Shown here piece by piece: positions 9,306 through 35,248 of a DNA stretch of 64,000 nucleotides. How positions within the stretch are numbered: position 1 is the first letter of the stretch; each line of letters begins with the position of its first letter. The position numbers were made by a program, and so were the translations under genes. Origin of the DNA: Pecten maximus (lineage: Eukaryota); assembly GCF_902652985.1 (NCBI RefSeq), contig NC_047019.1, positions 17,794,001-17,858,000 of the forward strand, in the 5' to 3' direction. The notes beneath the pieces were generated by a model. It was not told the origin of the DNA. It made no database searches and was given only the letters and a program-made list of their open reading frames with translations.

Positions 9306-9569
9306 GACAGCTACCTGATATGGGGAAATGACGTTAAGGAAGTCGAGTTAAGAGATTTCGTGTTTATGAGCTCATCTAATCACTATTTACATATACAAAT
9401 GCACCCTTATATTGAAAGGGGCTTCTATTAGATAAGCAAATATTTCCTGCAATTTCTAAATGAAACCTTATTTTTCGATCGAATTGGATGGAATATATGT
9501 ACTGCACATATATTACTACCAAATTCTCTGATAGAAATTGATATAATGATACATAAATCAATTCATCTT

Positions 9570-10815: not shown

Positions 10816-11538
10816 TTAGCCCGCAATGAGAAGTGTTGTATAGTTCGAGTGGCGCATACCAAAACTACATCCCGACCCCCGGGACTGTCTGTTTGGTTGG
10901 TATGCTGCAGGGCCGGGATTTCGAGACTTGTCCTGTATGCTCCCACACCTAGGTCGAATGCTGTATGCTGGGGGTCTTGGGTTGTAGACTTCAGACTTGA
11001 TGACCCCATATGTCCCTGGGCCCGGGGATTTGCTATTACTTGCTGTCAGTGCTCGTCTGGTGCCTAAACTGTACATAGGAGCTTGTCTCTTACCACTCTG
11101 TACTGTTTTACCAATACCACCCGGCACTTTATAACAATTTGGCGCGGGTGTTCGTCCGGATTTCCTGCTTCGATGGCGACCCCCAAAGCTGAAGGCATTC
11201 CTAGGGTTAGAGTGCGACTTTTCGGTGTTGTACGCCCCTGGGCCAGGGCTGCCATGTTTGGACTTTGAAGGGTGACGCCCACTTATCGAATACTTGGGCG
11301 TACCATCAATCCCTGTCCTATACAGCTTGGAATTGGGAAAGTACTTACTCGGACCAGGACTTCGGTCCTTTTGGTTCCGTCCGACGCGATGACCAAAGGT
11401 ATGGGCAGGCTTCATCACATGAACACTCCGTGGGTCGTGAGATTTCTGCCCCACTAGACCAGGTAATCCGTAAACGGGCCCGGGACCCGAGAAGCTGGCT
11501 GCTATGGGGGCCCGAGGGCGGGTATGACGGTACGCCAT
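10816..11538 (-). CDS. ODF3: Outer dense fiber protein 3 / CIMAP1 family (SHIPPO-repeat) protein, divergent paralogue, 240 aa, single coding exon
   Basis: N-terminal PRAPIAAxxxGPGPxYGLP motif, repeated PGPGxY / PxYS(I/L) / FSFG units and C-terminal SFGMRHS. Collinear with 18360-19112. A splice acceptor (CTTCTGTACAG) lies just upstream of the ATG at ~11563, and AATAAA at 10065-10060. Confidence 0.9.
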   Translation of the reverse strand: MAYRHTRPRAPIAASFSGPGPVYGLPGLVGQKSHDPRSVHVMKPAHTFGHRVGRNQKDRSPGPSKYFPNSKLYRTGIDGTPKYSISGRHPSKSKHGSPGPGAYNTEKSHSNPRNAFSFGGRHRSRKSGRTPAPNCYKVPGGIGKTVQSGKRQAPMYSLGTRRALTASNSKSPGPGTYGVIKSEVYNPRPPAYSIRPRCGSIQDKSRNPGPAAYQPNRQSRGSGCSFGMRHSNYTTLLIAG

Positions 11539-12221
11539 ATCTTTAAAGGAAGCTCTATATCACCTGTACAGAAGAATCAGTTCATCTCCGCCTCAGAGAT
11601 ACACCTGTGTGGAATTTCCGAGTTAAAAATTTCCCTGGTTGCCGTCCAGTCTCATTAAACTTTCATATAATATGAACACTGTCGAGTCACTAACTCGAGT
11701 ATACGTCCGATTTACATGTGTTTATCACGGAAATGACTCTTACCAACGCTGTAAACACGTCGGGCCTCAATCAAAACAAGAGTTGCTATATAATATAAGT
11801 GTTACGTGAGCTAGTACTAATATCGTGTGTAAATTTATTCGTGTAGACTGCATGTAGTGACTCGAAAACTCTGAACCGGAATCGTTCACATACGACACCA
11901 GTTTTTAAAGGTCCCACCTATGTACATAGGTATTTCTATTCTAAGGTATTGTACAGGTAGACACGGTTCAATACACATGTCCGCGAGCATATGTTTGAAC
12001 TTTTATTGGCAGATTGTGGACATTTAAATATTGGTATTTGTTGACGAGAAGTCCACAATGGGATGACAAGGATAACGTCGACGTTGATAGCCGTGTGAAT
12101 ATCATAATTATCCCCAATCACACCTGTTAAATACCTCAAAATGTCAAAAAAATCAGTCTTTGATCTGATTATAACACTAGACTGATAATAAAATTGAATA
12201 GTTATTTACCAACAGCAACAG

Positions 12222-12235
12222 GTTGTCATAGAGAC
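12222..12235 (-). promoter_or_regulatory. RFX X-box at the putative 5' non-coding exon/promoter of the first ODF3 paralogue
   Basis: Minus-strand GTCTCTATGACAAC matches GTHNYYATRRNAAC exactly. It lies ~12 bp from a candidate splice donor (G|GTAAAT at 12209) that could join the acceptor at ~11563. Confidence 0.6.
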
Positions 12236-13045
12236 AATACAGTGAAAAAGGTAATAGTTGCGCAAAATCTTGAGTGAATTCCAATTATATAACAACAGGT
12301 TCAGAACTATTCACATTAAAGGAATAGATTAACGCTGATCTTCATTAAACCATTCAAAAAAGAATACCTAAAACGAAATAAAAAGTATAAAAGTCGGTCA
12401 AGTCATTACCGAGATTTTCTAGGTTGAATTCAAACAATGTAACTTCCGGGTTGGCCTAAACGAAAACATAAATTATAGTTACGTCATATGAGCAACATAT
12501 TCCAGGAAGTGCGGAAAGAATATTTATTATGTCACATTGGTTTATCTATTCATTTTCCCCAAATAGTGCGTGTACTTAATTCCAGGTTACTGTAGGAGCC
12601 ATTTTTTATTTCAGCACATATATAGTATTGGTATCTCGATTTCTCAGAGTAAGACCTGGTTGAACATGTCTCCAATTCCATGTGTTGGTTTTTCTTGGTT
12701 TCTAATTATGCATACTTAATTTGGAAAATGATCAATTGAATTAAATGGCAGAGATTTTTATACTTCAAACACGAACTTGAGCTATCGTAGACTCTACGGT
12801 GGCAGATACATGTACATGTATATAGGATCTTCTGTTTCGAACGAATATGTGTCGATATATACCTCCGATTACAAGTTATGATTAAATCAATGCATAACAA
12901 GGACTGGATAAAAACCGTGCTAACGCGTGTGACAATATGTACATAGTTACTGTAAGCACATAGGGTTACTATAAATACATTCTCTGTGAAAACCTTGATT
13001 ATGGGGATTAAAAAATAAGTATGGGTGTTTCTATCTCTGTTTACG

Positions 13046-16000
13046 GTTGCCCACTTCTACAGACGGAGCTCCGGATGTATATAGTTACCCCACTATTACA
13101 GTAGGGTGACCTAGATGTATATAGTTACCCCACTATTACAGTAGGGGGACCCGGATGTGTATAGTTACCCCACTATTACAGTAGGGGGACCCGGATGTAT
13201 ATAGTTACCCCACTATTACAGTAGGGGGACCCGGATGTATATAGTTGCCCCGCTATTACAGTAGGGGGACCCGGATGTATATAGTTACCCCACTATTACA
13301 GTAGGGGGACCCGGATGTGTATAGTTACCCCACTATTACAGTAGGGGGACCCGGATGTATATAGTTTACCCCACTATTACAGTAGGGGACCCGGATGTAT
13401 ATTAGTTACACCCGCTATTACAGTAGTAGGGGACCCGGATTTGTGTCTAGTTACCCCACTATTACAAGGTAGGGGGACCCGGATGATATATTACCCCCAC
13501 TATTACAGTCGGTGAACCTAGATGTTATATAGTTACCCCACTATTTACAGTAGGGGGACCCGGAACTTGTGTATAGTTACACCACTATTACAGTAGGGGG
13601 ACCCGGATTGTATATAGTTACCCCACTATTTACAGTATGGGAGACCCGGATGTGTATAGTACCCCACTATTTACATTAGTGGGGACCCGGATGTACTATA
13701 GTTACCCACTATTACCAGTAGGGTGACCTAGATGTTATCATAGTTTTACCCCCACTATTACAGTAGGGGGACCCGGATGTGTATAGTTACCCCACTATTA
13801 CAGTAGGGGGACCCGGATGTATATAGTTACCCCACTATTACAGTAGGGTGACCTAGATGTATATAGTTACCCCACTATTACAGTAGGGGGACCCGGATGT
13901 ATATAGTTGCCCCGCTATTACAGTAGGGGGACCCGGATGTGTATAGTTGTCCAACTATTACAGTAAGAGGCCCCGAATTTGTATAGTTGTCCCACTATTA
14001 CAGTAAGATGCCCCGAATTTGTATAGTTGTCCCACTAAATACAGTAAGAGGCCCCGGATGCCCACGGCTATCCCACTACTACAATATAGAACTTAACCGG
14101 ATGTATTTATGGTTGTCCTACCGCTACAGTATGCAACCAAGTGTGTCTTTGGTTACATTGATACAATATTTGTATCCGTGTGCTTATGGTTGCTCCACTA
14201 CTGCAGTATAGAGCCCGGATGTATTTGATTGCCCCAGTGGGTGTCTATGGTTGCCAACTACTAGAGAATAGAGCCCCAGATGATGGACCCCCGGATGTCT
14301 GTGGTTGTCCTATTGCAACCTGATACAGAATCGAGTCCCGGATGTCTTTGGTTGTCCCAACACTACAGCCCGAAGTTGCAGATGTGTGGCTACCACTACA
14401 GCACGGAGCCCCAAATGTGTGTGACTGTCCAACCACTACAATATGGAGTCCCAGATGACTGTTGATGTCCACCACTACAGTATGGAGCCCCGGATGTCTG
14501 TGTCTGTCTATCCATTACAGTATGAAGTCCCAGATGTTTGTTGATGTCCCACCACTACAATATGGAGCCCCAGATGACTGTTGATGTCCCACTACTACAG
14601 TATGAAGCCCCAGATGTTTGTTGATGTCCCACCACTACAATATGGAGCCCCAGATGACTGTTGATGTCCCACCACTACAGTATGGAGCCCCAGATGTTTG
14701 TTGATGTCCCACCACTACAATATGGAGCCCCAGATGACTGTGGATGTCCACCACTACAGTATGGAGCCCCAGATGACTGTTGATGTCCACCACTACAGTA
14801 TGGAGCCCCGGATGTCTGTTGATGTCCACCACTACAGTATGGAGACCCAGATGACTGTGTCTGTCTATCCATTACAGTATGGAGTCCCAGATGACTGTGG
14901 ATGTCCCACCACTACAATATGGAGCCCCGGTTGTCTGTGTCTGTCTATCCATTAGAGTATGGAGCCCCGGATGTCTGTGTCTGTCTATCCATTACAGTAT
15001 GAAGTCCCACATGTTTGTTGATGTCCCACCACTACAATATGGAGCCCCAGATGACTGTTGATGTCCACCACTACAGTATGGAGCCCATGATGACTGTTGA
15101 TGTCCACCACTACAGTATGGAGCCCATGATGACTGTTGATGTCCACCACTACAATATGGAGCCCCGGATGTCTGCGATGTCCCACCACTACAGTATGGAG
15201 CCCCGGATGTCTGTGTCTGTCTATCCATTACAGTATGAAGTCCCAGATGTTTGTTGATGCCCCACCACTACAATATGGAGTCCCAGATGACTGTTGATGT
15301 CCACAACTCCAATATGGAGCCCCGGATGTCTGTGATGTCCCACCACTACAGTATGGAGCCCCGGATGTCTGTGTCTGTCTATCCATTACAGTATGGAGTC
15401 CCAGATGTTTGTTGATGCCCCACCACTACAGTATGGAGTCCCAGATGACTGTTGATGTCCACCACTACAATATGGAGCCCCGGATGTCTGTGTCTGTCTA
15501 TCCATTACAGTATGAAGTCCCAGATGTTTGTTGATGCCCCACCACTACAGTATGGAGCCCCAGATGACTGTGTCTGTCTATATCCATTAGAGTATGGAGC
15601 CCCGGATGTCTGTGTCTGTCTATCCATTACAGTATGGAGTCCCAGATGTCTGTGGATGTCCCACCACTACAGTATGGAGTCCCAGATGACTATTGATGTC
15701 CCACCACTACAGTATGGAGTCCCAGATGTTTGTTGATGCCCCACCACTACAGTATGGAGTCCCAGATGACTGTTGATGTCCACCACTACAATATGGAGCC
15801 CCGGATGTCTGTTGATGCCCCACCACTACAGTATGGAGCCCCGGATGTCTGTGTCTGTCTATTCATTACAGTATGGAGTCCCAGATGACTGTGGATGCCC
15901 CACCACTACAGTATGGAGTCCCAGATGACTGTTGATGTCCACCACTACAATATGGAGCCCCGGATGTCTGTGATGTCCCACCACTACAGTATGGAGCCCC

Positions 16001-17310
16001 GGGTGTCTGTGATGTACCACTACTACAGTATGGAGCCCCAGATGTCTGTGGATGTCCCACCACTACAGTATGGAGCCCCAGATGACTGTGGATTTCCCAC
16101 CACTACAGTATGGAGCCCCGGGTGTCTGTGATGTCCCACCATTACAGTATGGAGTCCCAGATGTCTGTTGATGTTCCACTACTACAGTATGGAGCCCCGG
16201 ATGTCTGTAATGTCCCACCACTACAGTATGGAGTCCCAGATGACTATTGATGTCCCACAACTACAGTATGGAGTCCCAGATGACTGTGACTGCCCCACCA
16301 TTAGAGTATGGAGTCCCAGATGAATGTGGATGTCCCACCATTAGAGTATGGAGCCCCAGATGACTGTGGATTTCCCACCACTACAGCATGGAGCCCCGGG
16401 TGTCTGTGTCCCACTGGTCTGTGATGTCCCACCACTACAGTATGGAGTCCCAGATGACTGTGTCTGTCTATCCATTACAGTATGGAGTCCCAGATGTCTG
16501 TTGATGTCCACCACTACAGTATGGAGTCCCAGATGACTGTGGATTTCCCACCACTACAGTATGGAGCCCCGGATGTCTGTGAATGTTTAACCACTACAGC
16601 ATGGAGCCCGGATGTGTTTAGTTGTCCCACTTCTACAGCATGGAGGCCCGGATGTGTATAGTTGCCCAACCAATACAGCATAGAGTCCGGATGTGTTAGT
16701 TGCCCCACTACTAGAGCATGGAGCCCCGGATGTGTATAGTTGCCCCTACTACAGCATAAATCCGGATGTATATAGTCGCCCCAATTCTACATCATGGAGC
16801 CCTGGATGTATATACTCGCCCCACTACTACATCATGGAGCCCGGAAGTATATAGTCGCCCCACTACTACATCATGGAGCCCCGGATGTATATAGTCTCCT
16901 CATTACTACATCATGGAGCCCCGGATGTATATAGTCGCCCCACTACTACATCATGGAGCCCCGGATGTATATATTCGCCCCGCTACTACAGCATGGAGCC
17001 CGGATGTATATACTCGCCCCACTACAACATCATGGAGCCCCGGATGTATATAGTCGCCCCACTACAACATCATGGAGCCCCGGATGTATATAGTCTCCTC
17101 ACTACTACATCATGGAGCCCCGGATGTATATAGTCGCCCCACTACTACATCATGGAGTCCGGATGTATATAGTCGCCCCACTACTACATCATGGAGCCCC
17201 GGATGTATATATTCGCCCAGTACTACATCATGGAGCCCCGGATGTATATATTCGCCCCGCTACTACATCATGGAGCCCCAGATGTACATAGTCGCCCCAC
17301 TACTACAGTA
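13046..17310. repeat. Composite ~40-bp minisatellite with three related subfamily blocks
   Basis: Block A ~13070-14060 (CCGGATGTATATAGTTACCCCACTATTACAGTAGGGGGAC). Block B ~14430-16600 (CCACCACTACAGTATGGAGCCCCAGATGACTGTTGATGT). Block C ~16600-17310 (CCCACTACTACATCATGGAGCCCCGGATGTATATAGTCGC). Confidence 0.97.
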
Positions 17311-17687
17311 CATACGTATACATTATATCTGTGTTTGTTACATATCCGAGTCTTATCTGTGTGGCATGGACAAATAGTAGATGAAAGGAGGTGACACAGC
17401 TTGTTTTCAAGGTTGCGGGAAAACCAGTTTCCGAGCACAAGTATTTTTTCTTCTAAATTATACTTGCATGATTAAATTTGCATTTCATGCATTTCAATAA
17501 CTGTCAAATGGATTTGCTGGACGTAAAGTTCTAACCTATCGACTGCATATGTTAATACAGAATTAAAGAACCCGAGAAGCAAACTAAAAATAAGCATGAA
17601 AAGCTAAAAATGTTTACAGTACCATTTTGTAGTTTCAATGTAATTGCATTTCTATTAATGAAAAATGTGACTTTCGGTCAGCGAAAG

Positions 17688-17790
17688 GAAACGCTGACAC
17701 CATGTATAAACAAACACGAGAAAACGCTGACACCATGTATAAACAAACACGAGAAAACGCTGACACCATCTATAAACAAACGAGAAAACA
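17688..17790. repeat. 33-bp tandem repeat, ~3 copies (AAAACGCTGACACCATGTATAAACAAACACGAG)
   Basis: Directly visible; the translation repeats KTLTPCINKHE. Confidence 0.9.
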
Positions 17791-18359
17791 CTGCTAATGT
17801 GATTGACATTGAGCAATTTATTGTGCACAGAAAAGAAAAACTGGGCACATAACTGGATTACATACACCTATAAATTAAATACAAATCATCATATATATTT
17901 ATTCCGTGTCGTGAGCAGACGTTAAACTAACTGGACACGATATCACATCGGTCAGTTTTGACCATCGTAATTGGACATAACTCACCGGCAAATATCCCTA
18001 CAAAATACGGTAACATGTACACATCCTGTTTTCAGAAAGACTCGTAGTGAAGACTCTGGTATGTTTCAGACCAAAAAAAAGTAAAAACCGATTAAACCAT
18101 TTCAGTCTTTTACAAGGCACTAGTTATATCGCTATGACATGACGATGTCCGATTCTCGAGTCCCCTATTGTATGCAACGTGTGTTTCCAAGGAGAATGTC
18201 CACGATATATTTCCATGGATACCATCTCGGATTTCAAAGATTTTTCCTACGACACGAACTGATGACGAAGTACACAATATACATCGAACACACCCGATTC
18301 TGGATGAATGTTCAGCAATATCACTAACAAAGTCTCGAAAAACAGTAACCACCCCGGGT

Positions 18360-19112
18360 CTACTCCGCATCAACGATGAGTGGCGCGATGTACGGGGAGT
18401 GGTGAATCCCGAAGCTGTAGTTAGGAGCTGCCCTTTTGTTGATTCTGACCGTCTCCGGGGAGTGAGCCCCTGGGCCGGGTTTCTGTGTACTATCTCCGGG
18501 CATGGCATTGCGCGCGGTCATACTATACATCGGAGCCTTGTTTTTGTACGTACCAGGTGTGGTTGTTTTGTAAGTTCCGGGCCCGGGAGCCCCGGCAAGG
18601 TCTTCGCTAAAGTGGCCCCTGTTTTGGCGAGACTTCATGGAATATATTGGTGCCTGTGTCTTGCTGCTCTGTACGGTTTTACCAGTCATAGGTGGGAGAG
18701 AGTAGTGGTTAGGAGCGGGCACGTTATCCGTCCTTCGGTTCCGATGTCGGGCACCGAAGCTGTACGCAGCAGGACGGAAGTGGGCTTGAGGTCCAACATG
18801 TTCAGGGCTGTATGCCCCAGGTCCGGGGACATTGAAGGTGGTGAGTTCCCTCTGGCGACCGTACACGGAGTAGTGTGGAGTTCCGTCCTTACCGTCACGG
18901 TAGTACTTGGTGAGGAAGTAACAGGGGCCAGGACTACAGTCATCCGTGAACTTTCCGTGACGTGTTCCGAACGAATAAGATGACCCTTTATGATGGACAC
19001 TCCGAGGGTCATGACCTTTTCCACCAATGATTCCCGGGAGGCCGTAACAGGGCCCGGGGCTACTGTACATGGCCGCTATAGGGGCCCGAGGTTTCGTATA
19101 ATTGTACACCAT
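18360..19112 (-). CDS. ODF3: Outer dense fiber protein 3 / CIMAP1 family (SHIPPO-repeat) protein, canonical-type, 250 aa, intronless CDS
   Basis: Hallmark motifs PRAPIAAMYSSPGPCYGLP, HDPRS, SPGPCY, DGTPHYS, VPGPGAYSPE, FSEDL..PGPGTY, PGDSTQKPGPGAHSPE and YSFGIHHSPY. AATAAA on the minus strand at 17903-17898. Confidence 0.96.
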   Translation of the reverse strand: MVYNYTKPRAPIAAMYSSPGPCYGLPGIIGGKGHDPRSVHHKGSSYSFGTRHGKFTDDCSPGPCYFLTKYYRDGKDGTPHYSVYGRQRELTTFNVPGPGAYSPEHVGPQAHFRPAAYSFGARHRNRRTDNVPAPNHYSLPPMTGKTVQSSKTQAPIYSMKSRQNRGHFSEDLAGAPGPGTYKTTTPGTYKNKAPMYSMTARNAMPGDSTQKPGPGAHSPETVRINKRAAPNYSFGIHHSPYIAPLIVDAE

Positions 19113-19347
19113 TTTGCTAACGTTTTTCTTCCTACACTATTGCCGTAATGTACTCCAATTCACAGTTCTATTTTTCAAAAACACGAAATTCAGTTCATAT
19201 TTCTTACGTATCTTTTCCAAATCACAAAAAATACTTCTTCAATATCTTAGTGAAGATGATTCCTTGACGAGAAATATAAGTGTCGGTTGTGTTAGCTCCT
19301 TGTCGTGTGTTTAGACCATAATGTCTGATGTTTGACACTCAAAGCCG

Positions 19348-19361
19348 GTATCCTAGGTAAG
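19348..19361. promoter_or_regulatory. X-box-like palindrome upstream of the second ODF3 paralogue
   Basis: GTATCCTAGGTAAG resembles the RFX GTNNCCTAGGNAAC class with mismatches, ~240 bp upstream of the ATG. Confidence 0.35.
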
Positions 19362-20297
19362 GAACACACTAGAACGCTCCACACTTGGAAAGTTCGATAT
19401 ATACATGGACTCTATACATAATTAATCGCCAACCGTTAGCAGTCTGACAAATGAATGTTGGCGCGGTGCCTTACCAATTTCTATAGTCCGTCTATCAGCC
19501 ATTCTGTACTTTTCGATATAGTGGAGTTTTTATCGGGTATTTGGTTAGACCCAATTCAAAAGAAGTGTCTGCGCATGAGTTATCGATAAAATTGTATTTG
19601 GTATTATATTTTTCAATGGTTATCAAAGTGTGAGATCTGTAGATTGGTAACCAGTTAAATATACTAGACATATCCCATGGAAGAGCCAGTAAGCATGTCG
19701 GATTGTTTGACTGTTGAACAGTGACACGGTTAGGGTGACCAAATTAAGCCAGGGGAAACAGAGCTCTGTTACCAACACAAAGATGTATATATACTTTATA
19801 TGATTTTTTATAGAAAGCTCAATATATTGACGGACAATCGCCCATTGGCTGATTGATACAATGTAGGTATTACTGTCTTTCACTTAAGGTGGTAGTTCTC
19901 TTCTATATTTCAATGTATAAGTAATGTTACATGTAAATAATCAACATAAATATTTTATAACTAGTACCTAGAGTAGATATCGTGTAGTCAGCATATTTTA
20001 AACACTACAATATATAAATGTACATATTACAATTAATATATCACATTTCAAACCGGACTGTAGGCGGAGGCTGTACGTATAGCGATACAGGAGACCGTTA
20101 ATTATTGTCTGTTCAGTCGCGGAACATATATATGACCTATTGTCTCGTATTCATTGATATGTCAATACCATGAGTATAAAACCCTTTACAACTAACACAA
20201 TAGGTGGACCAACACATTGTACGGAGTTCATCATAATTAAAAAAAATGTCTTTCATGTAGATCAACGGGGATTTTGTTTGGAATTAGACAAGATTTA

Positions 20298-22020
20298 TAC
20301 AGCGGTGAGGGGTGGGCGAGGTTCCGGGGATGTTTTGGGTGTATGATAGACATTTCCCCGTACAGCGGTGAGGGGTGAGCGAGGTTCCGGGGTTGGTAGG
20401 GATGTATGATAGACATTTCCCCGTACAGCGGTGAGGTGTGGGCGAGGTTCCGGGGATGGTAGGGGTGTATGATAGACATTTCCCCGTACAGCGGTGAGGG
20501 GTGGGCGAGGTTCCGGGGATGGTAGGGGTGTGTGATAGACATTTCCCCGTACAGCGGTGAGGGGTGAGCGAGGTTCCGGGGATGGTAGGGGTGTGTGATA
20601 GACATTTCCCCGTACAGCGGTGAGGGGTGGGCGAGGTTCCGGGGATGGTAGGGGTGTGTGATAGACATTTCCCCGGACAGCGGTGAGGGGTGGGCGAGGT
20701 TCCAGGATGGTAGGGGTGTGTGATAGACATTTCCCCGTACAGCGGTGAGGGGTGGGCGAGGTTCCGGGGATGGTAGAGGTGTGTGATAGACATTTCCCCG
20801 TACAGCGGTGAGGGGTGAGCGAGGTTCCGGGGATGGTAGGGGTGTGTGATAGACATTTCCCCGTACAGCGGTGAGGGGTGGGCGATGTTCCGGGGATGGT
20901 AGGGGTGTGTGATAGACATTTCCCCGTACAGCGGTGAGGGGTGGGCGAGGTTCCGGGGATGGTAGGGGTGTGTGATAGACATTTCCCCGGACAGCGGTGA
21001 GGGGTGGGCGAGGTTCCGGGGATGGTAGGGGTGTGTGATAGACATTTCCCCGTACAGCGGTGAGGGGTGTGCGAGGTTCCGGGGATGGTAGGGGTGTGTG
21101 ATAGACATTTCCCCGTACAGCGGTGAGGGGTGTGCGAGGTTCCGGGGATGGTAGGGGTGTGTGATAGACATTTCCCCGGACAGCGGTGAGGGGTGGGCGA
21201 GGTTCCGGGGATGGTAGGGGTGTGTGATAGACATTTCCCCGTACAGCGGTGAGGGGTGGGCGAGGTTCCGGGGATGGTAGGGGTGTGTGATAGACATTTC
21301 CCCGTACAGCGGTGAGGGGTGGGCGAGGTTCCGGGGATGGTAGGGGTGTGTGATAGACATTTCCCCGTACAGCGGTGAGGGGTGTGCGAGGTTCCAGGGA
21401 TGTTTTGGGTGTATGATAGACATTTCCCCGTACAGCGGTGAGGGGTGGGCGAGGTTCCGGGGATGGTAGGGGTGTGTGATAGACATTTCCCCGTACAGCG
21501 GTGAGGGATGGGCGAGGTTCCGGGGATGGTAGGGGTGTGTGATAGACATTTCCCCGTACAGCGGTGAGGGGTGGGCGAGGTTCCGGGGATGGTAGGGGTG
21601 TGTGATAGACATTTCCCCGTACAGCGGTGAGGGGTGGGCGAGGTTCAGGGGATGGTAGGGGTGTGTGATAGACATTTCCCCGTACAGCGGTGAGGGGTGG
21701 GCGAGGTTCCGGGGATGGTAGGGGTGTGTGATAGACATTTCCCCGTACAGCGGTGAGGGGTGGGCGAGGTTCCGGGGATGTTTTGGGTGTATGATAGACA
21801 TTTCCCCGTACAGCGGTGAGGGGTGGGCGAGGTTCCGGGGATGGTAGGGGTGTGTGATAGACATTTCCCCGGACAGCGGTGAGGGGTGTGCGAGGTTCCA
21901 GGGATGTTTTGAGTGTATGATAGACATTTCCCCGTACAGCGGTGAGGGATGGGCGGGGTTCCGGGGATGGTAGGGGTGTATGATAGACATTTCCCCGTAC
22001 AGCGGTGAGGGGTGGGCGAA
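20298..22020. repeat. GC/G-rich minisatellite, 63-bp unit (~27 copies)
   Basis: Unit CAGCGGTGAGGGGTGGGCGAGGTTCCGGGGATGGTAGGGGTGTGTGATAGACATTTCCCCGTA; the ORF track shows a 21-aa periodicity. Confidence 0.98.
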
Positions 22021-22379
22021 GTCTCCATATATAGTCCGGAAGTCCGATATATAAATCAAGGCTACATAGATTAAGCACGGAAATCTCGTAATATGTGAGG
22101 CACGTGGATTATTAATCGTTTACCCTTAAGTTTCAATGAAGGTTTATATATTTACCAGGAATGCTTTGTCTTTGTCTAGTCGTTTGTTGGTTGAATGCTA
22201 CACATTGGTTTCATACTTATGGTTCACATTACGCTTTTGTTGATAGTTAAACTTGAAGAGAGTTGAAATTATCAACGCATAATACGACAATTTAAAAACT
22301 TTACCAACTTTTATTTAACACCATGCAACAATCTTCTAAAATAACATCATCCACCGGATTGTATCATAATCCCACGTAC

Positions 22380-22920
22380 GATATATCATATCTTCTTACT
22401 CATCATCACCCAACATATCGTCATCTAACTTATCAACATCTAACATATTATCATCTGTCTCATCATCATCTAACATATCATCAGCTGTCTCATCATCATA
22501 TAACATATCATCAACTAACCCATCATCATCTAACAGATCATCATTTTACTAATCATCTAACATATCATCATCTGACTCATCATCACCCAACATATCATCA
22601 GCTGTCTCATCATCATATAACATATCATCAACTAACCCATCATCATCTAACAGATCATCATTTTACTAATCATCTAACATATCGTCATCTGTCTCATCAT
22701 CATCTATCATATTATCATCTAACTCTTTATCATCGAACATACCATCATCTAACTCATTATCATATAACATATCATCTAACTAATCATCATCAAACATATC
22801 ATCTAATTCATCATCACCTAATATATTATCATCCAAGTATCAACGTATCATAAGAAATATCATCATCAGTTATATCATGTAGGTTATCATAAACACTATA
22901 TATTATCATCGAACATATAA
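22380..22920. repeat. Low-complexity (CAT)n-derived repeat, ~15-bp unit CATCATCTAACATAT
   Basis: Directly visible; accounts for the His-rich ORF. Confidence 0.9.
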
Positions 22921-23296
22921 TAATCAAACTTATGATCCAACATTAAACCATCAAAAATTAACTCGGACTTTCGGACTATTGGGCCGTCGGACTATCGGAC
23001 CTCCGGAGTAATGGAGTGACGGTAAAAGTGAGCGGACACCTTACTTCCGAATGAGTCAAGCCTTACCGGTTCAGCGGAGTGATGGACCGGAAGGGGTACA
23101 CTTCCTGGAGTCAGATGTTGCTCCGTGCAGTGGAAGGACTCGGGCATGACCCGTTTTCTGTGGATGGGTTGACGGGGAGGGGATTTAGACATGACCCTGT
23201 GCAGCGGATGGGTGGACGGAGAAAGGGTATCACTTCCGGGAGGTGGCTGGGGGTTTGTTGGAGTGTCAGATTTGACCCATATATGGATTACTGGAA

Positions 23297-23535
23297 GGGG
23301 GTATCCCTTCATGAGGAATCGGACATGGCTCCGCTCAGGTGAGGGGTTGACCCTGGTGAGGGGGGTATCCCTTCATGAGGAATCGGACATGGCTCCGCTC
23401 AGGGGGTTGACTCTGGTGAGGGGGTAATCATTCAGGAGGAGTCGGACATGGGTCTGCTCAGGTGAGGGGTTGACTGTGGTGAGGGGGTAATCCAGGAGAG
23501 TCGGACATGGCTCCGCTCAGGTGTGGGGTTGAGGG
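23297..23535. repeat. ~60-bp G-rich tandem repeat, ~4 copies
   Basis: GAGGAATCGGACATGGCTCCGCTCAGGTGAGGGGTTGAC recurs four times with divergence. Confidence 0.85.
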
Positions 23536-24535
23536 GAGGGTTTTCACCTGACTCGTACAACGAAACGCATTGATGGACGGTAAGGGATAAAAAAAATTGT
23601 AAAAAACATCAGCTACTGCAATACCCTCATCACGTTCGGCTGGTCAATACATTTACATGTTCACAGCTTTACCATGGTGGTATGTATTTTCTAACTAGGA
23701 CCAGACCGAAGGGATTAGGGGGTTCAAGTTCAATGTTACCAAAAAGCCCTGAGGCCTATAAGTATACAAGATATATAACATTTAACATTATACGCAATAA
23801 AGATGTTGAGGGGTAGAGGCTAAGGGGTGGTGTGTTGGCGAGTGGGGGTCGGGGATAGCACTGATGAAAACAAATACAGGTTAGTTGAATGAGAATTAGA
23901 TTTTATGAAGTATACATATACTAGCATAACGTAAAAGGTACCAGAAATAGATTTGGAAAGTGTACGTGTACACACACACACACCTGGCGGACATGTTACA
24001 ATCGTACGTGATAGTACATAGATGCACGTCCTTGGTTAGTCATCCAAGGTTAAAAAAAAACAAGGATACAATTCAATTACTGTGTTTAATTTAATAAATT
24101 ATTTAACTCACCAATATGCTAATATTGTTACTCACTGTCGCTAAATAATTTCACTAAAACCAGAACAAGTTATACGCTACATTACATGGTTTCTAAATGA
24201 TTTTTTTGTTAAATTCATCATGAACGAAATTGTAGACCACCTTATAACACAGTGACGACCCTTGTCTATTCGTTTGACCATCGAATCAATAGTTGATACA
24301 CACATACAGGTATTTGTGTATACACATGTGAATGTCCTAATAGGTAAAGTAAATTCGTTTTAAATCAACAAATCAATTGAGATCGGTGGAATTTCTTTTG
24401 TGGTGTGTTTTCAAGACCGGTATATAATCTCGACCATAAAGGTGAGAGCGAGTTTCCCGTGCGCTACCCTCGCCAACCCAGACTGTACTAAGTGTATAAG
24501 CGGACTGCCCGCTTCCGTTGAGCTAATCTTCCTAC

Positions 24536-24600
24536 GTTGCTAGGAGCGTAACCAATCAAACGACAGATATTCCATTTTCCAGAGCGACGGTTGTATAAAA
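24536..24600 (+). promoter_or_regulatory. Core promoter of arginine kinase: RFX-like half site, CCAAT box, TATA box
   Basis: GTTGCTAGG at 24536, CCAAT at 24552, TATAAAA at 24594-24600, about 100 bp upstream of the ATG at 24704. Confidence 0.6.
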
Positions 24601-24703
24601 GCAAGCGAGAAGTTATACCATGTATCGGAGGTACCTAGACCAGCTAAACACACAAACTAGTCAGCTCATCTCGGAACAGCAGCAAATTACACAAAAAACA
24701 AAA

Positions 24704-27700
24704 ATGTCGGCCGAGCCAGAATACAAGAAAATCCCAGTGGCTGAGTTATGGGCGAAACTTCAGGCAGCAAAAGATTGTAAATCTTTATTGAAAAAGCATC
24801 TTACCCAGGAAAGATATGATGCTTTGAAGGATTTGAAAACAAGCATTGGCGGTGACCTTGGGGATTGTATCCAGTCAGGTGAGGGACGTGAATTGCGTGC
24901 GTGTGTGTGCGAGTGCGTTTTACAAATTTGGAAATGTGATGTGATGTTCGCGCATTGCGCAAGAACTGATATACAGCGGAATGTGTTCCAACTTGTGTAG
25001 ATAAGGCAATGATCCGGACCCATAGCTTTGCTGAAGAAACGTGGAAAAGTATAATGTGAGGGAAATATTCTGAGAAAAATAATGTTTAAAAAGAGAACTA
25101 CATTGTACTTTGACTGTGAAATTAGTTTAAAACAACAGATGGATTAAAATATTATGTCGACATTCGATTACAATGCACAAGGAATACGTATTATTGGAAG
25201 TTTTTTAATGTAATATTTTTCTTACAACAAATGGTAACTAAACTGTGCTGTATATTTTGTGACTTTTTGTCCTCTCAATGATTTAAGTCTGTTAGAGTTA
25301 TTTCCCCTCAATAGTTTTACAGAAACTTAGTAAAAACACTTGGAAATGCGAATAAAACACGTATGAAACTACCATGGACGGAAGTCTGTGATTATGAACA
25401 TGTCCTCATGTTTAGATATAATGTTTATAATTTAAAGGTAAATAATTTTACATGTATTTTAACAGGTGCCTGTAGGGGACTGCATTGGGCCTCGATTGAA
25501 AATTTGTTGCCCTGTATTTTACCTGACCTTGGAAATGCACCACACAAGTGACAGCAAAGGTCCAAAACCAACTAGAATATCTAAGATTAATACATATAAA
25601 ATGTATTATGATGATGATAATTTATAAGTCATTCAGTCAAAGTAAAATCTCTTAAATGCATGCTACATACATTATGTTCACCGAATTTTCCCATTTTCAG
25701 AAAAGATACTGACAATTTTTTTCCCACTTTCGGACTGGGTCAAATTTCAAGAATACCTGGCAAAATACGGGTTTTGAGAGTACATGTATACAGTCACAGT
25801 AACCACACTGTGTAATGAATTATGATATACACCGATAAAATTTCTCGAACAAAATCGATAAGGAGACTGCATAATAGTGAAAATTTGTATCAATATAATA
25901 TTTGTATCTAAATTAACTTTAATCATAGTTATTTTTTCATTTGTTTCAAATTAAGCTTTAGATGTGAAAAAAAAATTGTTTTCTGAAAATTTGTTTTGCA
26001 ATGACTCGATCATCATGTTTGGAAAAACCACCACAAAATTGCCTATCATAAACCAGCCGGTCCGAGTATGGATTCGTTACCTAAAATTGCTTAAACAGTA
26101 AATCTTTCAATATGTTATTTAAAGTTGCATTGATTTATGACGGTTTCACTAAAATATTTTTACTGAAAGCAATTTGCTACTTAAAAACTTGCTGTTGCTC
26201 CATCAGAAGTATTGCATCGATTTTGGTACTTTCCCATGTCCAGATAAATCTTATTTTGGCATTAGTATGGTGTTTCATGATTGAATAAATGCGACTTGGA
26301 TACAAAAAATTTAAAGAGTTGAGTTTAAAGTGATTTTGGATTTTTTTTAGCAATAAAGTTATACCTCAATTGGCATGAAATTGTAATAGGCATTGGTGGT
26401 ATTATTGTTGTAATGTACTTTGTGTGTGTAGACTAGGGTTGTACCAGGCTCTCACTATATGTCCCAACCCCACTCCTATCATTTTTTAATTACATGGATT
26501 CATTTCCATGTATATATGTTTATATTATCTCCTGTTCAATACCACTAAAACAAGGCACATCCTTAAATGACCCTGGCTGTTAATAGGACGTTGAAAAAAA
26601 TAAACCAAACCAAACCAATATTAAACCAATACCACCAAGTTTGAGATTGTTATAGAAAATGTATATTTATATCCCCATTCCCACTCGGTAGATGATCATG
26701 TAACATACCAAGTGTATATGGCACATCACTAGAAGTAAGGAGATACTTAAAAATTAAAGACGTTGAGAACTATGAACTAATGAGTTAGTAATGAAGGAGT
26801 TTATTCATTATAAGAGTTGCTTTCCTCTGGTTATTTTGTTTTTTCTTTTGTCAAATTGATTGTTCAGTAAAACTATATAGATACGAGTAATGATACGCTT
26901 CCCTAAGATAAGATATGTATCGTGATAATCATCTCACGATACAATGTGTATCGCGCTACATTTATTTTGCAAATAATCAATGAAATAATTTAACACCATC
27001 TGTTTCAGTTACACGGAACTAAAAATGTTTCCAAATATGTGATTTAAATGAAATAGGCAGTTCTTTCCATTCTTAACAGTCACTTGATGAAAATACTTCT
27101 GCTACCATGTTGGTTTTGGGTGATACTAATTAGGCTTATTACCACGCAGAAACCGATAATGATCTGATCCATACGCATGCAAACATGGGTATTCCTGTCA
27201 TGTAAGAAATGAGAAAAATAAATCTGAACTGAATCATGCCATTTACACCGCGATGTATTGTCCCCACGGATCACTGTTGTAGCACCAATAGATATGTTTA
27301 CAATTATTGGCAAGTGGAGGAAGGGCATTCAGTTGTTGATCCTGGATTCTTATTGTCATTTTTGGTTTCAACTTAAACATGTACAGTGCACTCCAATTTC
27401 AAATGGGGTTTATACCCATTTTATATATGTAAATTAGACTGACCTTCTTCAGCTAGAAATAGAAATAAGATTTATAATTGATAATTATTGATCTCTTGGA
27501 TATATCTCATTGTAGAGTTTCAAAGTAAGGGCAGATAATCAAGTGTGCAATTTACAAAAACTTTTGGGCTGATAGCCAGTGAGACTTGTTTCAATTTTGA
27601 GTTGGATATTAAAGTAAACACCAGTTTTAAACATCAAAGATTCATATGCATTTTCAGCTGTATTCCTTATTATGAAGTGAACAATTTAAAAAAAAGTCTT

Positions 27701-30700
27701 TGAAAATTATTTAACATTTGTCCAAATTTGCAAAAATATGATTAAATAATTAAAATGTGATTTTTAAAAGAAAGTTGGAATACAAAACAGGACAGTGCAG
27801 TACAGTAAGCTAAGTAACTTATGATTGGATTTGCCTATATATGTCCATTTAGCATTATCAACCATAACTGCCAACTGAAAACAGTTCATGATCAATGCTC
27901 AAATGTTTTGTGTTCAGATTGTCTAAAAATATGCAATTTGTCACTACTGTCACTACTGACTATTAATTCATTTAGCATATGCAAGAATGTATGTAAAGAT
28001 GCCAAGAGATTATTTTCAAATTGACGGTTTAATTAACATTAATACCTGGTGTTTAGAAACATATCTTTTTCCATGTATTTCTAGGATGCCTGAACTTGGA
28101 CAGTGGAGTTGGTATTTACGCTTGCGACCCTGAAGGTTACGATACCTTTGCCCCTGTTCTCGATGCAGTCATTATGGACTACCATAAGGTCAAAAAGGTG
28201 GAGCACCCTGCTCCAGACTTTGGTGACTTGGACAACTTGGACTTGGGCAATCTGGACCCTGACAATGAGATGATTGTCAGTACCCGTGTCCGCGTGGGTA
28301 GGAGTCACTCCGGGTTCCCATTCCCACCTGCTGCTACCAAGGATGTAAGTTGTTAAAAATGATTGTTATCATCAGAAATACTATTGATTAAAGGAATATT
28401 TTCCTTAAGTTTTGATTTCATCAGATGTTTTTTGTCAAAAATGTACAAAAGTATCTACTCATGAAGAAAAGATATTTGATTGATGGAAATAAAATTCTTC
28501 ATAGATCTAGCTAGATCAATTTACAACTGCTTGTATGGCCCTGATTGTGTCATAACTGATTTGTATTTTATTATGAAATATTGGTGTACATAATCAAATT
28601 GACAGAAAATACTTATAAAAAATTTTGAAACTTTGTTGATTATGCCAATAAAAAGTTCTGGCTAATAAGAGATTATTTTTGTAATGTCTCCACAATGATT
28701 GAACCCCAGGACATCTAAGACACTAACATCTTGACATCCAAAGGTTATTTTGTTGCTGCATTTTCCCACTCATTTTAGATGCTGGTTTCTGTTGGACATT
28801 AGTTTTTATACGCCCGATGAAAGACGGGACGTATTTTGTTATGTTGGCGGGCGGGTGGGTGGGCACATATGGTGTCCGGACCATAACTCCAATACTACTT
28901 GACCCAGGCTCTCCATACTTGACACAAATATACATATTGATGAGCCGGGGGGTGTCGCATACCAAAATCATGCCCCTTACCCCCGTATTTGTGGAGCTAT
29001 TCCTCTTTGATGATTTTACTTGTCCGGACCATAACTCCAATACTACTTGACCCAGGCTCTCCATACTTGACACAAATATATATATTGATGAGCCGGAGTG
29101 TCGCATACCAAAATCATGCCCCTTACCCCTGTATTTGTGGAGCTATTCCTCTTTGATGATTTTACTTGTCCGGACCATAACTCCAATTCTATTCGACCCA
29201 GGCTCTCCATACTTGACACAAATATACATCTTGATGAGCCAGAGTGTCGCATACCAAAATCATGCCCCTTACCCCCGTATTTGCGGAGTTATTCCCCTTT
29301 GATGATTTTACTTCTGGCACATATGGTGTCCGGACCATATCTCCAGGACTACTCGACCCAGGCTCTCCATACTTGACACAAATGTACATCTTGATGAGCC
29401 GGAGTGTCACATACCAAAATCATGCCCCTTACCCCCGTATTTGCGGTGTTATTGCCCTTTGATGATTTTGTAATTGCTCACCATTCGGTTAATAATGGTA
29501 TTAGGAGGCTGATTCTTTGCAAAGAGGTTCTTTTAATGTATATATTCTGTATATAAACATGTAAACTAAGTTTTGTGTTGTTGTGTCTAAACCAAGGTTT
29601 CCCATATTTGCAACATATATACATCTCATCATTTAAAGTTGCCCTTCGGTTTCGACTACACACCATTATGTGTATCAATATCTCCTTCCAACTTCCCAAC
29701 AATGATACTTCATTTTAAAGCTTTACAACCTGTGAAACTACCCCCTTCCAAGTGTCAAATATTGCGGCGGGCGTATGCTGTGGCCCTCCAACGGGCCCTT
29801 GTTCATGTTTAAATTTGAGACTGGTTGTATAAATAAGACAAAGGAATACATAGATATAAAAAATGTTCCTTTTACATTTTGCTGTGTTGACTTTAGTCAA
29901 TACAGTCATACAAAGGAAAGGAACATTTCAAACACATAACATGTTCTTTCACAAATCATTTAATAATTTATTGCAGGAAAGTAGAAAAATTGTCATTATT
30001 TTTGTATAAAAAACATTTTGGTTAATTTTCAGTTAGAGAGAATTACTTTCAAATTACCTTTTTTTCATAATTCATGTATAGGCCTAGAGCTGATAATAGG
30101 TGCTTAAATGATCTGAAAATGAAATTGTAGATTATATATGGTTAGACCAACGGTAATGCTGAATAAGTCCAATATTAATGCTGAATAAGTGATGGTAAGC
30201 CCAATATTAATGCTGAAAAAGGGATGATCAGCTCAGTACTAATGCTAAATAACTGATGGTAAGCCCAACATTAATGCTGAATAAGGGATAAGCCCAATTA
30301 TATTGCTGAATATTGGATGACAAGCCCAATACTAATGCTAGATAAGTGATGGTAAACCCAATTATAATGCTAAAAAAGTGATGATAAGCCCAGTATTATA
30401 TTAATAATGCTAAATAAGGGATGATAAGCCCAATATTATATATAATAATGCTAAATAAGGAATGATAAGCCCAATATTATATATAATAATGCTGAATAAG
30501 TGATGGTTAGCCCAATAATAATGCTGAATAAGAGATAAGCCCAATAATAATGGTGAATAAGAGATAAGCCCAATAATAATGGTGAATGATGGTAAGCCCA
30601 AAAATAATGCTAAATAAGGTATGATTACCCCAATAATAACGTTGAATGAATAAGTGATCACAAGCCCAATATTAATGCTGAATAAGTGATGATAAGCCCA

Positions 30701-33700
30701 ATATTAATGCTGAATAAAGGGTAAGTCCAATATTAATGCTGAATAAGGGATAAGTCCAATATTAATGCTGAATAAGGGATAAGCCCAATATTAATGCTGA
30801 ATAACGGATAAGCCCGATATTAATGCTGAATAAGGAATAAGCCCGATATTAATGTTGAATGATGGTAAGCCCGATATTAATGCTGAATAAGGGATAAGCC
30901 CGATATTAATGCTGAATAAGGAATAAGCCCAATGATAATGTTGAATGATGGTAAACCCAATGATATTGCCGAATAAGTGATGATAAGCCCAATATTAATG
31001 CTGAATAACGGATAAGCCCGATATTAATGCTGAATAAGGAATAAGCCCAATGATAATGTTGAATGATGGTAAACCCAATGATATTGCTGAATAAGTGATG
31101 ACAAAATTACAGGATAGGTGCCTTTTTAGTATTTAGTCCCTTAATTTAAAATATTGATGTGAAAAAAAATTCTTCATTTACAGCAAAGGAAGAAAATGGA
31201 AGAAAAGACCATTGCAGCTCTAGAAACCCTGGATGGGGATCTTGCTGGCAAATACTTCTCCCTAGAGACAATGTCCAAGGACGACGAGAAACAGCTTATT
31301 GCTGATCATTTCCTCTTCAAGAATGATGACAGGTCTGAATTTTAATCTTTTATGCATGCTTTAATCATACTTCCTGCAAATAAGATTCAGCAGATATTAT
31401 ATCGGAGTTCATAAAACCACGGATAGAACTAAAAACCCTGTCTGTATTTTCATGCACCATTTACACTGAAGGCCGTTTTTACATTGTGAATTGGATTTTA
31501 TTGCAACTTGGAAAAACCTGATATTAGACATTATAACTGACACAATACAAGCTTGCATGTTGGATTATAATCTGACCCAACACAAACACATGCAACACAA
31601 TTTCAAATGATGCAAACTTATACAACTACTTGCTTTACTTTAGGTTTTTGAGGGAAGCTGGAGGTTACAACTTCTGGCCCGTTGGTCGCGGTATCTACTT
31701 CAGTACGGACAAGAAGTTCCTTACTTGGATCAACGAGGAGGACCATCTCCGTTTTATCTCTATGCAGATGGGTGGTGACCTCGGTGCTGTATACAAGAGA
31801 CTTATCAAAGTAAGGCCCAAGCTGAATAAGCTTGCATCAATTCCATAGTTCTTCAAGTGTATAACTGATGAAATGTCAATTATGTTAGATTAAATACAGA
31901 TAACAACTCAATAAGTTACATAAAAATAAACAGGTTTTGTTAGAATTATCCTTTTGGTAAGTATATAAAACAGCACAACTATTCTTGTCATCCTCTGAAG
32001 TTAATTAGATCAGATACTTCAATATTTATTATAAATCTATCTTAACAATGAGTTTACTTTTGGGTACAGTAAAACCCTGTTATATTGCCACCCTTTATAC
32101 CAACAAACTCGCGTATCACCATGAATTTATTCAGAACGGATTTCCTCCCATGCTAATGCACCTGTTTTACTGCCAAACTCGCATACCGCCATCCACCATC
32201 ATATTTCAACAACAAACGGTGAAAATAGTATCATCTTGACCTCGTTAACATCGCCAAATTGAGTCCGGAAGGACGTGTTTATTTAAGGAATAAACTGTCT
32301 TTTTTTGGTGTCTATGGTCGATAAATAGATGCCAGAGCTTTGCAAACAAACGTCATATATATGACACGACCATGTAAATATGTTATTGTTACGTGATTGA
32401 CTGCCGACTGACAGATAATTAGCTGTACACACCATGAGCGGGTGTACACACATGAAATCAATGAACCATGGCTATTGCTTTGTGGTCTTTCCTTAGGAAA
32501 GTTTCGTTAATTATGATGAATAAAACTCACTTTTGTGATAATGCTTCACGTTTTGTTAAAGTATCATGGAACTCTGTTACTCCAGAGACAAGAGTAAGAT
32601 GTTGGATACACAGAGGTATCATACCACGTAATGACAATGTTAACAATAACTGGAAACCCCAGACAAAGTTCGAAAAACATTACTCACGCGAGTTAATGAT
32701 GAAACGTCAAATTTCTAGAACACAAGCATTCTACAGCTGAATGGGACAATCAGAAATGTTTATCTCTTCAACAGTTTGTTTTGTCAGTTTGTCAGTTGAA
32801 GGCAAAACAGACAACAATTGGTACGTTTTTTCGGCGCTGGGTAGAACATGCACACAGTTAAACGAGGTAACAGTGAAAATCATGTTACGATTACTAGATC
32901 ATGTGATGCAAATTACTATGACATTATCTGGAAAATAATTTTAATTAATACTTATTTCTTATCAAAGCAGATATATGCGAAATTTGATGCAATATTTTGA
33001 TATGATTAAACTGTTTTTGATTTTCAAAGTCTACAATTGTTATGGAAGCACTATTTATAGTGTTTGGACAGCAAACTTGGGTATGAGCGGCAAACCCGAT
33101 ATACCTCCAAACTCGTTATATGCCAAAATCACAGAGAACAGAAGGTGGTGATAAAGTCAGGTTTTACTGTAGTTTAAAATTTCAAGTTCAAAAACTGGTG
33201 TCAAAATTAAAATTTCATGTGTGCATAGCTTAATTTTGTACATAAGTAAACAATATATATGATGGACAATTTTATTGACATTTAGTATTGCCTAATGTTT
33301 TTGTTTTAAAGTCTCAATATTGTTTGATATTGATTTTACTGTCATTAAAAAAAGGAAAAAAATGACTAATACTGCACCATGTCTAATCATCACATCACTG
33401 TTTGATTCCATTAGTCATAGCATAAAAATCATTTTGATGTAAAATTTATTGAATATTATATATTAAATATATATGTATTTAATATTGTATCTATAGGGTC
33501 TAGTAAGTAATAACGGTGGAATAGTCCAATATAGGTATCGGATCCTAACATTCAATATTGTATCTGTATATATATATCATATCATCTAATAGACGACTTC
33601 CACAATGATCATGTCAAAATATTGGGCCGACTGTCACTGCGCCATTGAAACATTCTTTTTAAGAACACTGATGTGGCGCAGCGGTATAAGCTGCAGGTAT

Positions 33701-35248
33701 TTCTGGCTAGTCGATTGGGTGACGTAGATCGCGAGTTTGAGGCCAGGTCAGGGCACGAGTCATAAAGTTGTCTTTCTTATTTGTTATATGCATATATATT
33801 ATAGAATCTGTGCTCTAGATCCCATACTATGTTAAGGAATTAAATTTGAAATAGATATTGTATGAATACTCGTTCACAATTTTTTTCTGGTTGTCCTCGG
33901 TCAGTATTTTTTCTCATGTTAATAAAACGATGTATTGACCTTATGAAAAGGCTATAATTGTATCTAAAAATCTAATTCCAGGCCTTAAAGACACTAAGCC
34001 AGAAGCTTGATTTTGCTCACAACAAGAAGTGTGGTTATGTTACCTTCTGTCCCACCAACCTTGGCACCACCTGCAGGGCTAGTGTCCACATCAAGGTCCC
34101 CAAGCTGGCTGCTGCTCCATCTACCGAAGGAAACAAGAGCAAGCTGGAAGACATCTGTGCTAAATTTAATTTGCAACCCAGAGGTGAGGATGTAATAGTG
34201 TCAAATCCTGGCTTGAAGATATGAAATGGTGTTGAAACAAGAGTTAACTGGTTTCTATGGTAACACAGTTCAACCAAACATCAAATACCTTACTGGTTTC
34301 TATGGTAACACAGTTCAACCAAACATCAAATACCATACTGGTTTCTATGGTAACACAGTTCAACCAAACATCTAGTACCTTACTGGTTTCTATGGTAACA
34401 CAGTTCAACCAAACATCTAGTACCTTACTGGTTTCTATGGTAACACAGTTCAACCAAACATCTAGTACCTTACTGGTTTCTATGGTAACACAGTTCAACC
34501 AAACATCTAGTACCTTACTGGTTTCTATGGTAACACAGTTCAACCAAACATCAAATACCTTACTGGTTTCTATGGTAACACAGTTCAACCAAACATCAAA
34601 TACCTTACTGGTTTCTATGGTAACACAGTTCAACCAAACATCAAATACCTTACTGGTTTCTATGGTAACACAGTTCAACCAAACATCTAGTACCTTACTG
34701 GTTTCTATGGTAACACAGTTCAACCAAACATCTAGTACCTTACTGGTTTCTATGGTAACACAGTTCAACCAAACATCTAGTACCTTACTGGTTTCTATGG
34801 TAACACAGTTCAACCAAACATCAAATACCTTACTGGTTTCTATGGTAACACAGTTCAACCAAACATCTAGTACCTTACTGGTTTCTATGGTAACACAGTT
34901 CAACCAAACATCTAGTATCTTACTGGTTTTATGGTAACACAGTTCAACCAAACATTAGTACTGCTGTTTAACATACATCTAATAATTAAATATTGGTTTC
35001 TTTTGTTTTGAAAAGATGGGAAGATTACAGTTAAATACAACATGAACTTTTTTCTGCACAAACACAGAATGATACTGACATTAACAATGTTTTAATTTAT
35101 TTCAGGAATCCACGGTGAGCACACAGAAAGTGTAGGAGGTGTGTATGATATCTCCAACAAGAGGAGACTGGGTCTGAGCGAGCTTGAGGCTATCATGGAA
35201 ATGAAGAACGGAATTGTAGAAGTCATGAAAGCAGAGAAAGCTTTATAG
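24704..35248 (+). CDS. AK: Arginine kinase (ATP:guanido phosphotransferase), 6 coding exons, 364 aa
   Basis: Exons 24704-24878, 28085-28344, 31184-31332, 31644-31809, 33982-34183 and 35106-35248. All introns are GT-AG with compatible phases; total 1095 nt ending in TAG. Motifs [66 protein letters not shown] and [21 protein letters not shown]. Residues equivalent to arginine-specific D62, Y68, R193, P272 and H315 (Limulus numbering) are present. Confidence 0.97.
26549..26618 (+). mobile_element. SINE 3' tail fragment
   Basis: CCTTAAATGACCCTGGCTGTTAATAGGACGTT followed by an (AAACC)n tail, a typical molluscan SINE 3' end. Confidence 0.55.
28803..29803 (+). mobile_element. Non-autonomous Helentron-associated (HINE / DINE-1 / pearl-like) element with internal ~146-160-bp tandem repeats, in AK intron 2
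   Basis: 5' T-run followed by subTIR ATACGCCCG (28808) and nearby IR CGGGACGTAT; short (GCGG/GTGG) microsatellite; ~4 central repeats starting ~28873, 29022, 29168 and 29328; 3' subTIR CGGGCGTAT (29768) followed by hairpin GGCCC-TCCAAC-GGGCC and CTTGTT. Confidence 0.8.
30155..31100. repeat. Degenerate AT-rich tandem repeat, ~29-35-bp unit (AAGCCCAATATTAATGCTGAATAAGGGAT), AK intron 2
   Basis: Directly visible. Confidence 0.92.
32067..33169. mobile_element. Non-autonomous Tc1/mariner-superfamily (pogo/Tigger-like) element in AK intron 4
   Basis: TA|CAGTAAAACCCTGTTATATTGCCACC ... GGTGGTGATAAAGTCAGGTTTTACTG|TA: imperfect TIRs with TA target duplication and no transposase ORF. Confidence 0.8.
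33670..33757 (+). mobile_element. tRNA-derived SINE head / tRNA-like remnant
   Basis: A-box TGGCGCAGCGG and degenerate B-box GAGTTTGAGGCC; no convincing cloverleaf. Confidence 0.45.
34248..34955. repeat. 45-bp minisatellite (~15.7 copies) in the last AK intron; each full unit carries the X-box GTTTCTATGGTAAC
   Basis: Unit CTGGTTTCTATGGTAACACAGTTCAACCAAACATC(TAG/AAA)TACCTTA. Motif starts at 34251 + 45n (n = 0-14), with a 1-nt-deleted copy at 34926. Confidence 0.98.

Follow-up and report, generated by a model that had tools for sequence, protein, structure and literature searches.

A 45-bp minisatellite with 15 X-box matches in the last intron of a Pecten maximus arginine kinase gene is probably an ordinary intronic VNTR

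The last intron of an arginine kinase (AK) gene of Pecten maximus contains a head-to-tail array of 45-bp units in which an exact match to the degenerate 14-nt X-box consensus recurs 15 times. This array is probably an ordinary, young and neutral intronic VNTR whose unit happens to hold an X-box-like palindrome. Regarding its amplification and its neutrality, we infer that a piece of ~45 bp of the last AK intron was amplified head to tail via replication slippage or unequal exchange. The array would still be turning over, as seen in multi-unit blocks of two unit variants (A and B) and in edges that appear to differ between individuals, and it would be transcribed as part of the pre-mRNA and taken out by normal splicing. 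Each copy would have the motif because the amplified piece chanced to include an imperfect palindrome fitting the consensus, and the uniformity of the motif would then come from the whole unit being young or homogenised rather than from selection on the motif. The window, i.e. the whole stretch of DNA analysed, spans 64,000 nucleotides (C5:17,794,001-17,858,000), and positions given without a contig name refer to it. Genome-wide searches covered 3,983 contigs with a total of 918,306,378 bases and a maximum length of 60,076,705.

TRF reports the minisatellite at 34247-34961, with a period of 45, 15.9 copies, 97% matches and 0% indels. The first-pass annotation had described a 45-bp array with 15 exact X-boxes at 34248-34955, and both the array and the 15 matches to the X-box pattern GTHNYYATRRNAAC were recovered here. 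Every full unit (15/15) carries the 14-mer GTTTCTATGGTAAC, an exact match to this pattern. The matches begin at 34251, 34296 and so on up to 34881, at a spacing of exactly 45 bp, and number 15 on each strand because GTTTCTATGGTAAC is an imperfect palindrome. Three further matches lie elsewhere in the 64-kb window, where dinucleotide-preserving shuffles expect 0.79. The features of the locus are as follows:

33982-34183, plus strand: penultimate coding exon of arginine kinase, ending ...LQPRG (RNA contigs; Pfam PF00217, ATP-gua_Ptrans)
34184-35105, plus strand: last AK intron, of 922 nt and with GT..AG ends (X5 and X16 RNA contigs)
34247-34961, no strand assigned: 45-bp minisatellite, 15 full units and one truncated unit (TRF; unit listing)
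34251-34894, no strand assigned: 15 copies of GTTTCTATGGTAAC, one per 45 bp (pattern search)
34922-34961, no strand assigned: terminal degenerate unit, the truncated 16th (unit listing; sequence)
35106-35248, plus strand: last coding part of arginine kinase, with the stop codon TAG at 35246-35248 (RNA contigs; Pfam PF00217; sequence)

The position of the array within the gene follows from protein domains and RNA contigs. Pfam assigns the ORFs at 24599-24997, 28057-28353, 31576-31845, 33976-34221 and 35096-35245 to ATP:guanido phosphotransferases, through matches to the N- and C-terminal domains; the gene model was searched exon by exon rather than as a joined protein. In Logan contigs from the RNA runs X5 and X16, 34183 is joined to 35106, with 922 nt skipped and GT..AG ends; the last intron is therefore 34184-35105, and the array occupies 715 of its 922 nt. 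Downstream, the 3′ UTR reaches at least 35600. Exon contigs have depths of 4411 and 1524, and intronic pieces have depths of 4.6-16 in X5 and, for the multi-copy unit contig, 163 in X16. The RNA contigs show no alternative joints. Expression of AK is thus strong, and the array is simply intronic sequence, spliced out precisely. An Rfam search of the whole window at the gathering threshold gave no match to a structured RNA, in the intron or elsewhere. The array had also been placed near ODF3/CIMAP1 genes, and this location is confirmed: the minus strand encodes two intronless, SHIPPO-repeat (ODF3/CIMAP1-like) ORFs, one at 10819-11559 and one at 18363-19136 (Pfam), 15-23 kb upstream of the array.

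Variation among the units bears on whether the motif itself has been maintained. Differences among the full units are confined to four sites of the unit: 37 and 39, which always change together between TAG and AAA, and 42 and 44, each altered in a single unit. The units are arranged in the order AA'BBBBAAABBBABB', in which A stands for ...CATCAAATACC... and B for ...CATCTAGTACC.... Such an order in A/B blocks is typical of slippage or unequal exchange. The 16th unit (34922-34961) has lost one nucleotide within the motif (GTTT-TATGGTAAC) and another further on (CAT-TAGTAC). The earlier statement that the motif is invariant, with variation in the spacer only, hence stands for the 15 full units and fails for the 16th. 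Even in the full units, the invariant block comprises positions 1-36, of which the motif takes up 5-18, and the 18 non-motif bases at 19-36 equal it in constancy. For three to four independent changes, the chance that all of them miss a 14-nt motif in a 45-nt unit is 0.33-0.23, and motif invariance is therefore no sign of selection. Variation within the array was accordingly rejected as a sign of selection on the motif on these two grounds, i.e. the small number of changes and the equal constancy of positions 19-36.

Contigs from further runs depart from the reference at the ends of the array. An X4 contig joins 34867 to 34956, skipping 88 bp, and lacks the last two units that the reference has, both of them mutated. 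In X6, contigs diverge from the reference precisely where the array begins (34247) and again at 35032 (70 bp past the array end). Either a divergent haplotype or an insertion could account for this, as could an artefact of the contigs; the 30-mer at the loose end does not occur in the reference genome with up to three mismatches. The unit-junction contig of X6 has ~10 times the depth of the flank, and the depth of the unit contig relative to the flank differs between runs. The X4 and X6 contigs, which come from short reads and give no allele length, suggest that the edges of the array are not fixed among individuals.

Other AK genes of the genome offer a comparison of the same intron. A search with the exon-5 ORF found four of them, three clustered at C5:13.30-13.33 Mb and one on C6, and an X-box was found within ~1.5 kb on either side of the matching exon in none of the four (0/4). 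The closest paralogue (64% identity; L054 870-1185, on C5 near 13.33 Mb) has an unrelated minisatellite of 28 bp x 10.9 in its homologous last intron. Minisatellites are therefore not special to this location, and the X-box was not inherited within the AK family. Searches for protein homologues with the same exon-5 ORF returned only AKs at up to 70% identity.

In its general traits, the array conforms to what is known of minisatellites: it consists of head-to-tail units in the range of 10-100 bp (45 bp x 15.9, 97%) and is locus-specific. It shares with intronic minisatellites and VNTRs the arrangement in head-to-tail units at a single locus, the high identity, the blocks of variants, the apparent differences at the edges and the removal by splicing. 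Nothing essential sets it apart from them, its sole special trait being a unit that matches a transcription-factor consensus. Several observations do count against the VNTR reading, namely the good X-box, the RFX domains encoded in the genome, the 15 phased sites, the two SHIPPO neighbours and an apparent density of X-box array loci 4-10 times that of two matched controls. The following paragraphs weigh these in turn.

Whether a unit with an X-box is a surprise depends on how frequently such units occur. The exact 14-mer GTTTCTATGGTAAC has 270 occurrences in the genome, versus 17 for its reverse, and at least eight other tandem arrays (nine sites fetched, with periods of 24-55 bp) hold it. These other arrays resemble the one in the AK intron in their unit length and in their 14-nt core, which is the same or similar, and their units and flanks are otherwise unrelated. 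X-box arrays have therefore arisen independently and are not one family. Examples are:

C2:9328818: X-box array with a 43-bp unit
C1:26875411: X-box array with a 44-bp unit
C1:6289905: X-box array with a 46-bp unit

X-box-like cores are thus frequent in independently arisen minisatellites of this genome. Pairs of X-boxes 6-66 nt apart number 5,445 genome-wide, and those in the first 32.6 Mb of C1 fall into ~25 separate loci, of which ~12 are arrays of at least four units; this extrapolates to several hundred X-box array loci across the genome. The published Pecten maximus annotation lists 174,931 simple repeats (PMC7191990), and several hundred loci among these would accordingly put an X-box in ~0.4% of arrays. 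Reading this genome in hundreds of windows of 64 kb can be expected to turn up dozens of X-box arrays; with ~4 genes within 25 kb on either side, chance alone would, by our estimate, place a few of these arrays close to a ciliary or sperm gene.

The same counts bear on a different reading, in which RFX proteins bind the array incidentally, without regulatory consequence and at most as a weak sink, or in which binding to X-box-like palindromes aids the origin or persistence of arrays genome-wide. We regard this as unlikely. The array has a sequence competent for binding, RFX genes are present in the genome, and X-box pairs are the most frequent among six patterns counted. They are 13 times as common as pairs of a control with swapped inner halves (GTHNRRATYYNAAC; 412 pairs) and four times as common as pairs of the reversed pattern. 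However, a second control with changed outer triplets (TGHNYYATRRNACA) yields 2,232 pairs and its reverse 4,694, so the excess is not robust. Across the six patterns, which range from 405 to 5,445 pairs (405-4,694 for those other than the X-box), the X-box is the highest but no outlier. A class-level enrichment of X-box arrays is hence not claimed, the initial 13- and fourfold values having been undercut by TGHNYYATRRNACA and its reverse. Counted by separate loci over the first 100 matches listed for each pattern, X-box arrays look 4-10 times denser than two matched controls, which could mean that they are not purely random.

Single matches give a similar picture. Genome-wide, GTHNYYATRRNAAC has 38,514 strand matches, compared with 12,542 for the reversed pattern and 7,559 for GTHNRRATYYNAAC, which makes single X-box matches 3-5 times commoner than the controls. 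Within the window, half-sites and sub-patterns of the X-box and of the control are about equally frequent. Low-order composition was considered as the source of the 3-5-fold excess and is unsupported by these counts, a result in favor of incidental binding. Against it, much of the single-site excess lies within dispersed satellites: many matches are spaced 127 or 169 bp apart, in satellite families carrying GTTACCATGGCAAC or GTTGCTATGGCAAC that recur at several loci and are interrelated (81-96% identity between loci). These satellites explain part of the excess. Units of this kind, 169 or 127 bp long and with a near-perfect X-box (GTTGCTATGGCAAC and GTTACCATGGCAAC, respectively), were seen at C1:2155575-2156259, C1:2745374-2745641, C1:1646732 and C1:506463.

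A further possibility is that the array is a homotypic RFX enhancer, in which RFX dimers on the 15 X-boxes of ciliated or spermatogenic cells would raise transcription of AK, of the SHIPPO/ODF3-like genes or of both, with an output that scales with the number of units. Such a role appears quite improbable, although parts of it are well founded. RFX DNA-binding domains are encoded at at least eight places in the genome, and RFX binding to the array is therefore physically plausible. The right half-site of the motif, GGTAAC (= GTTACC), is good, the left one, GTTTCT, is weaker, and the spacing between them is exact. Judged by established knowledge of X-boxes, binding of the motif in vitro is plausible; RFX could probably bind the array in vitro, and 15 in-phase sites would offer it high avidity. 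The 15 exact consensus matches at a fixed spacing of 45 bp and the neighbouring SHIPPO-repeat genes are in keeping with an enhancer. There are precedents for multiple sites as well: two X-boxes serve a small number of natural genes (PMC3245922), and in C. elegans a reporter can be driven by a synthetic tandem of three (bioRxiv 10.1101/2021.02.03.429678).

The location and history of the array speak against an enhancer. Among characterized C. elegans X-boxes, the majority lie within 250 bp upstream of the ATG, and scans of genomes with the X-box consensus have high false-positive rates (PMC1794439). The array is located in the last intron, ~10 kb downstream of the start codon and ~9.5 kb downstream of the first coding exon (~24700), and is thus not promoter-proximal. 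The AK 5′ region (22883-26000) contains no X-box even with up to one mismatch. Likeness to the X-box promoter elements of RFX/DAF-19 is found in the 14-nt imperfect palindrome fitting GTHNYYATRRNAAC and in the presence of multiple copies (PMC3245922, PMC1794439, bioRxiv 10.1101/2021.02.03.429678). Known X-boxes, however, number one to three per gene, lie mostly at -50 to -250 from the ATG and are conserved between species, while the array has 15 in a last intron and none in the matching regions of the paralogues. Additionally, the motif is not specially conserved within the array, the edges of the array appear to vary among individuals, and the rest of the genome has, by extrapolation, hundreds of arrays like it. 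Our literature search found nothing linking arginine kinase to RFX and cilia, nor X-boxes or RFX to bivalve repeats or transposable elements. Among functional VNTRs whose units contain transcription-factor sites, one comparison is MNS16A at human TERT, with GATA-1 sites, in which potential factor sites scale with copy number as they do in the array; for MNS16A, a promoter activity that depends on repeat number has been measured, whereas the array is known from its sequence (PMC5438627).

For AK and the ODF3 genes, the main proposal of the first-pass annotation had been an RFX enhancer tunable by copy number, or an RFX sink. No test came out in favor of this proposal: the array is in the last intron of a gene whose 5′ region lacks an X-box. 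The fallback offered alongside it, a recent amplification of a unit that holds the motif, agrees with the near-identical A and B units, the apparent differences at the edges, the absence of conservation specific to the motif, the X-box-free paralogues and the high base rate. A broader version of the functional idea is that the array belongs to a genome-wide set of independently arisen repeats with an X-box core that are occupied by RFX. The number of copies would then tune the RFX-dependent expression of nearby genes, here the highly expressed AK and the two SHIPPO genes, or the copies would buffer it by acting as a sink. We consider this version very doubtful.

The array might finally have come into the intron as a piece of a transposable element or of a dispersed satellite. 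For this one could cite that satellites of bivalves are often carried by mobile elements, as far as the part of the literature consulted goes, and that dispersed, X-box-bearing satellites of 127 and 169 bp exist in this very genome. Such an origin is nonetheless highly improbable, as all 15 occurrences of the 33-nt unit core in the 918-Mb genome (with up to three mismatches) are confined to the array, blastn with a unit dimer finds the array locus alone, the 151 bp 3′ of the array are single-copy, and neither unit nor flanks have any real similarity to other X-box arrays by blastn. An origin of this kind was accordingly rejected, and the unit is not the satellite of many loci that the earlier annotation had named as a possibility, its core, its dimer and the 3′ flank being unique in the genome.

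With the ordinary VNTR as the preferred reading, the array as it stands matters little, being another intronic VNTR in a genome full of such. It does serve as a reminder that, in a genome of 918 Mb, hundreds of tandem arrays will fit a degenerate 14-nt consensus, and it could be used as a polymorphic marker in Pecten maximus. If RFX binding were true, the array would be a natural, copy-number-variable homotypic cluster of X-boxes and would provide a handle on the recurrence of X-box-like cores in scallop repeats.

Some further observations concern the surroundings of the array. Single X-box matches, GTCTCTATGACAAC and GTATTTATAGTAAC, are located at 12222-12235 and 12965-12978 on the minus strand, ~0.7 and 1.4 kb upstream of the SHIPPO ORF at 10819-11559, and their location makes them better candidates than the intronic array for genuine RFX sites at a sperm-tail gene. 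At the second SHIPPO ORF (18363-19136), there are only sites with one mismatch, at 18028 and 18209, downstream of the ORF. TRF finds ~19 separate tandem arrays in the 64-kb window, a local load that favors the VNTR reading, and its density of minisatellites is unusual (5227-23532, 28873-31101, 37373-39452 and 58544-59304). Other arrays include one of 26 bp x 75 at 6870-8814, one with 40/119-bp units at 13071-17308 and, in the interval that separates AK from the second SHIPPO gene, one of 63 bp x 27 at 20298-22019. Several of the minisatellites yield long, spurious ORFs. An assembly gap of 198 N is present near 60220-60420. Downstream of the AK gene, the plus strand encodes an exon of a ubiquitin C-terminal hydrolase (UCH; 48652-49065) and, at 54824-55720, an ORF that contains a HEPN domain of the DZIP3 type.
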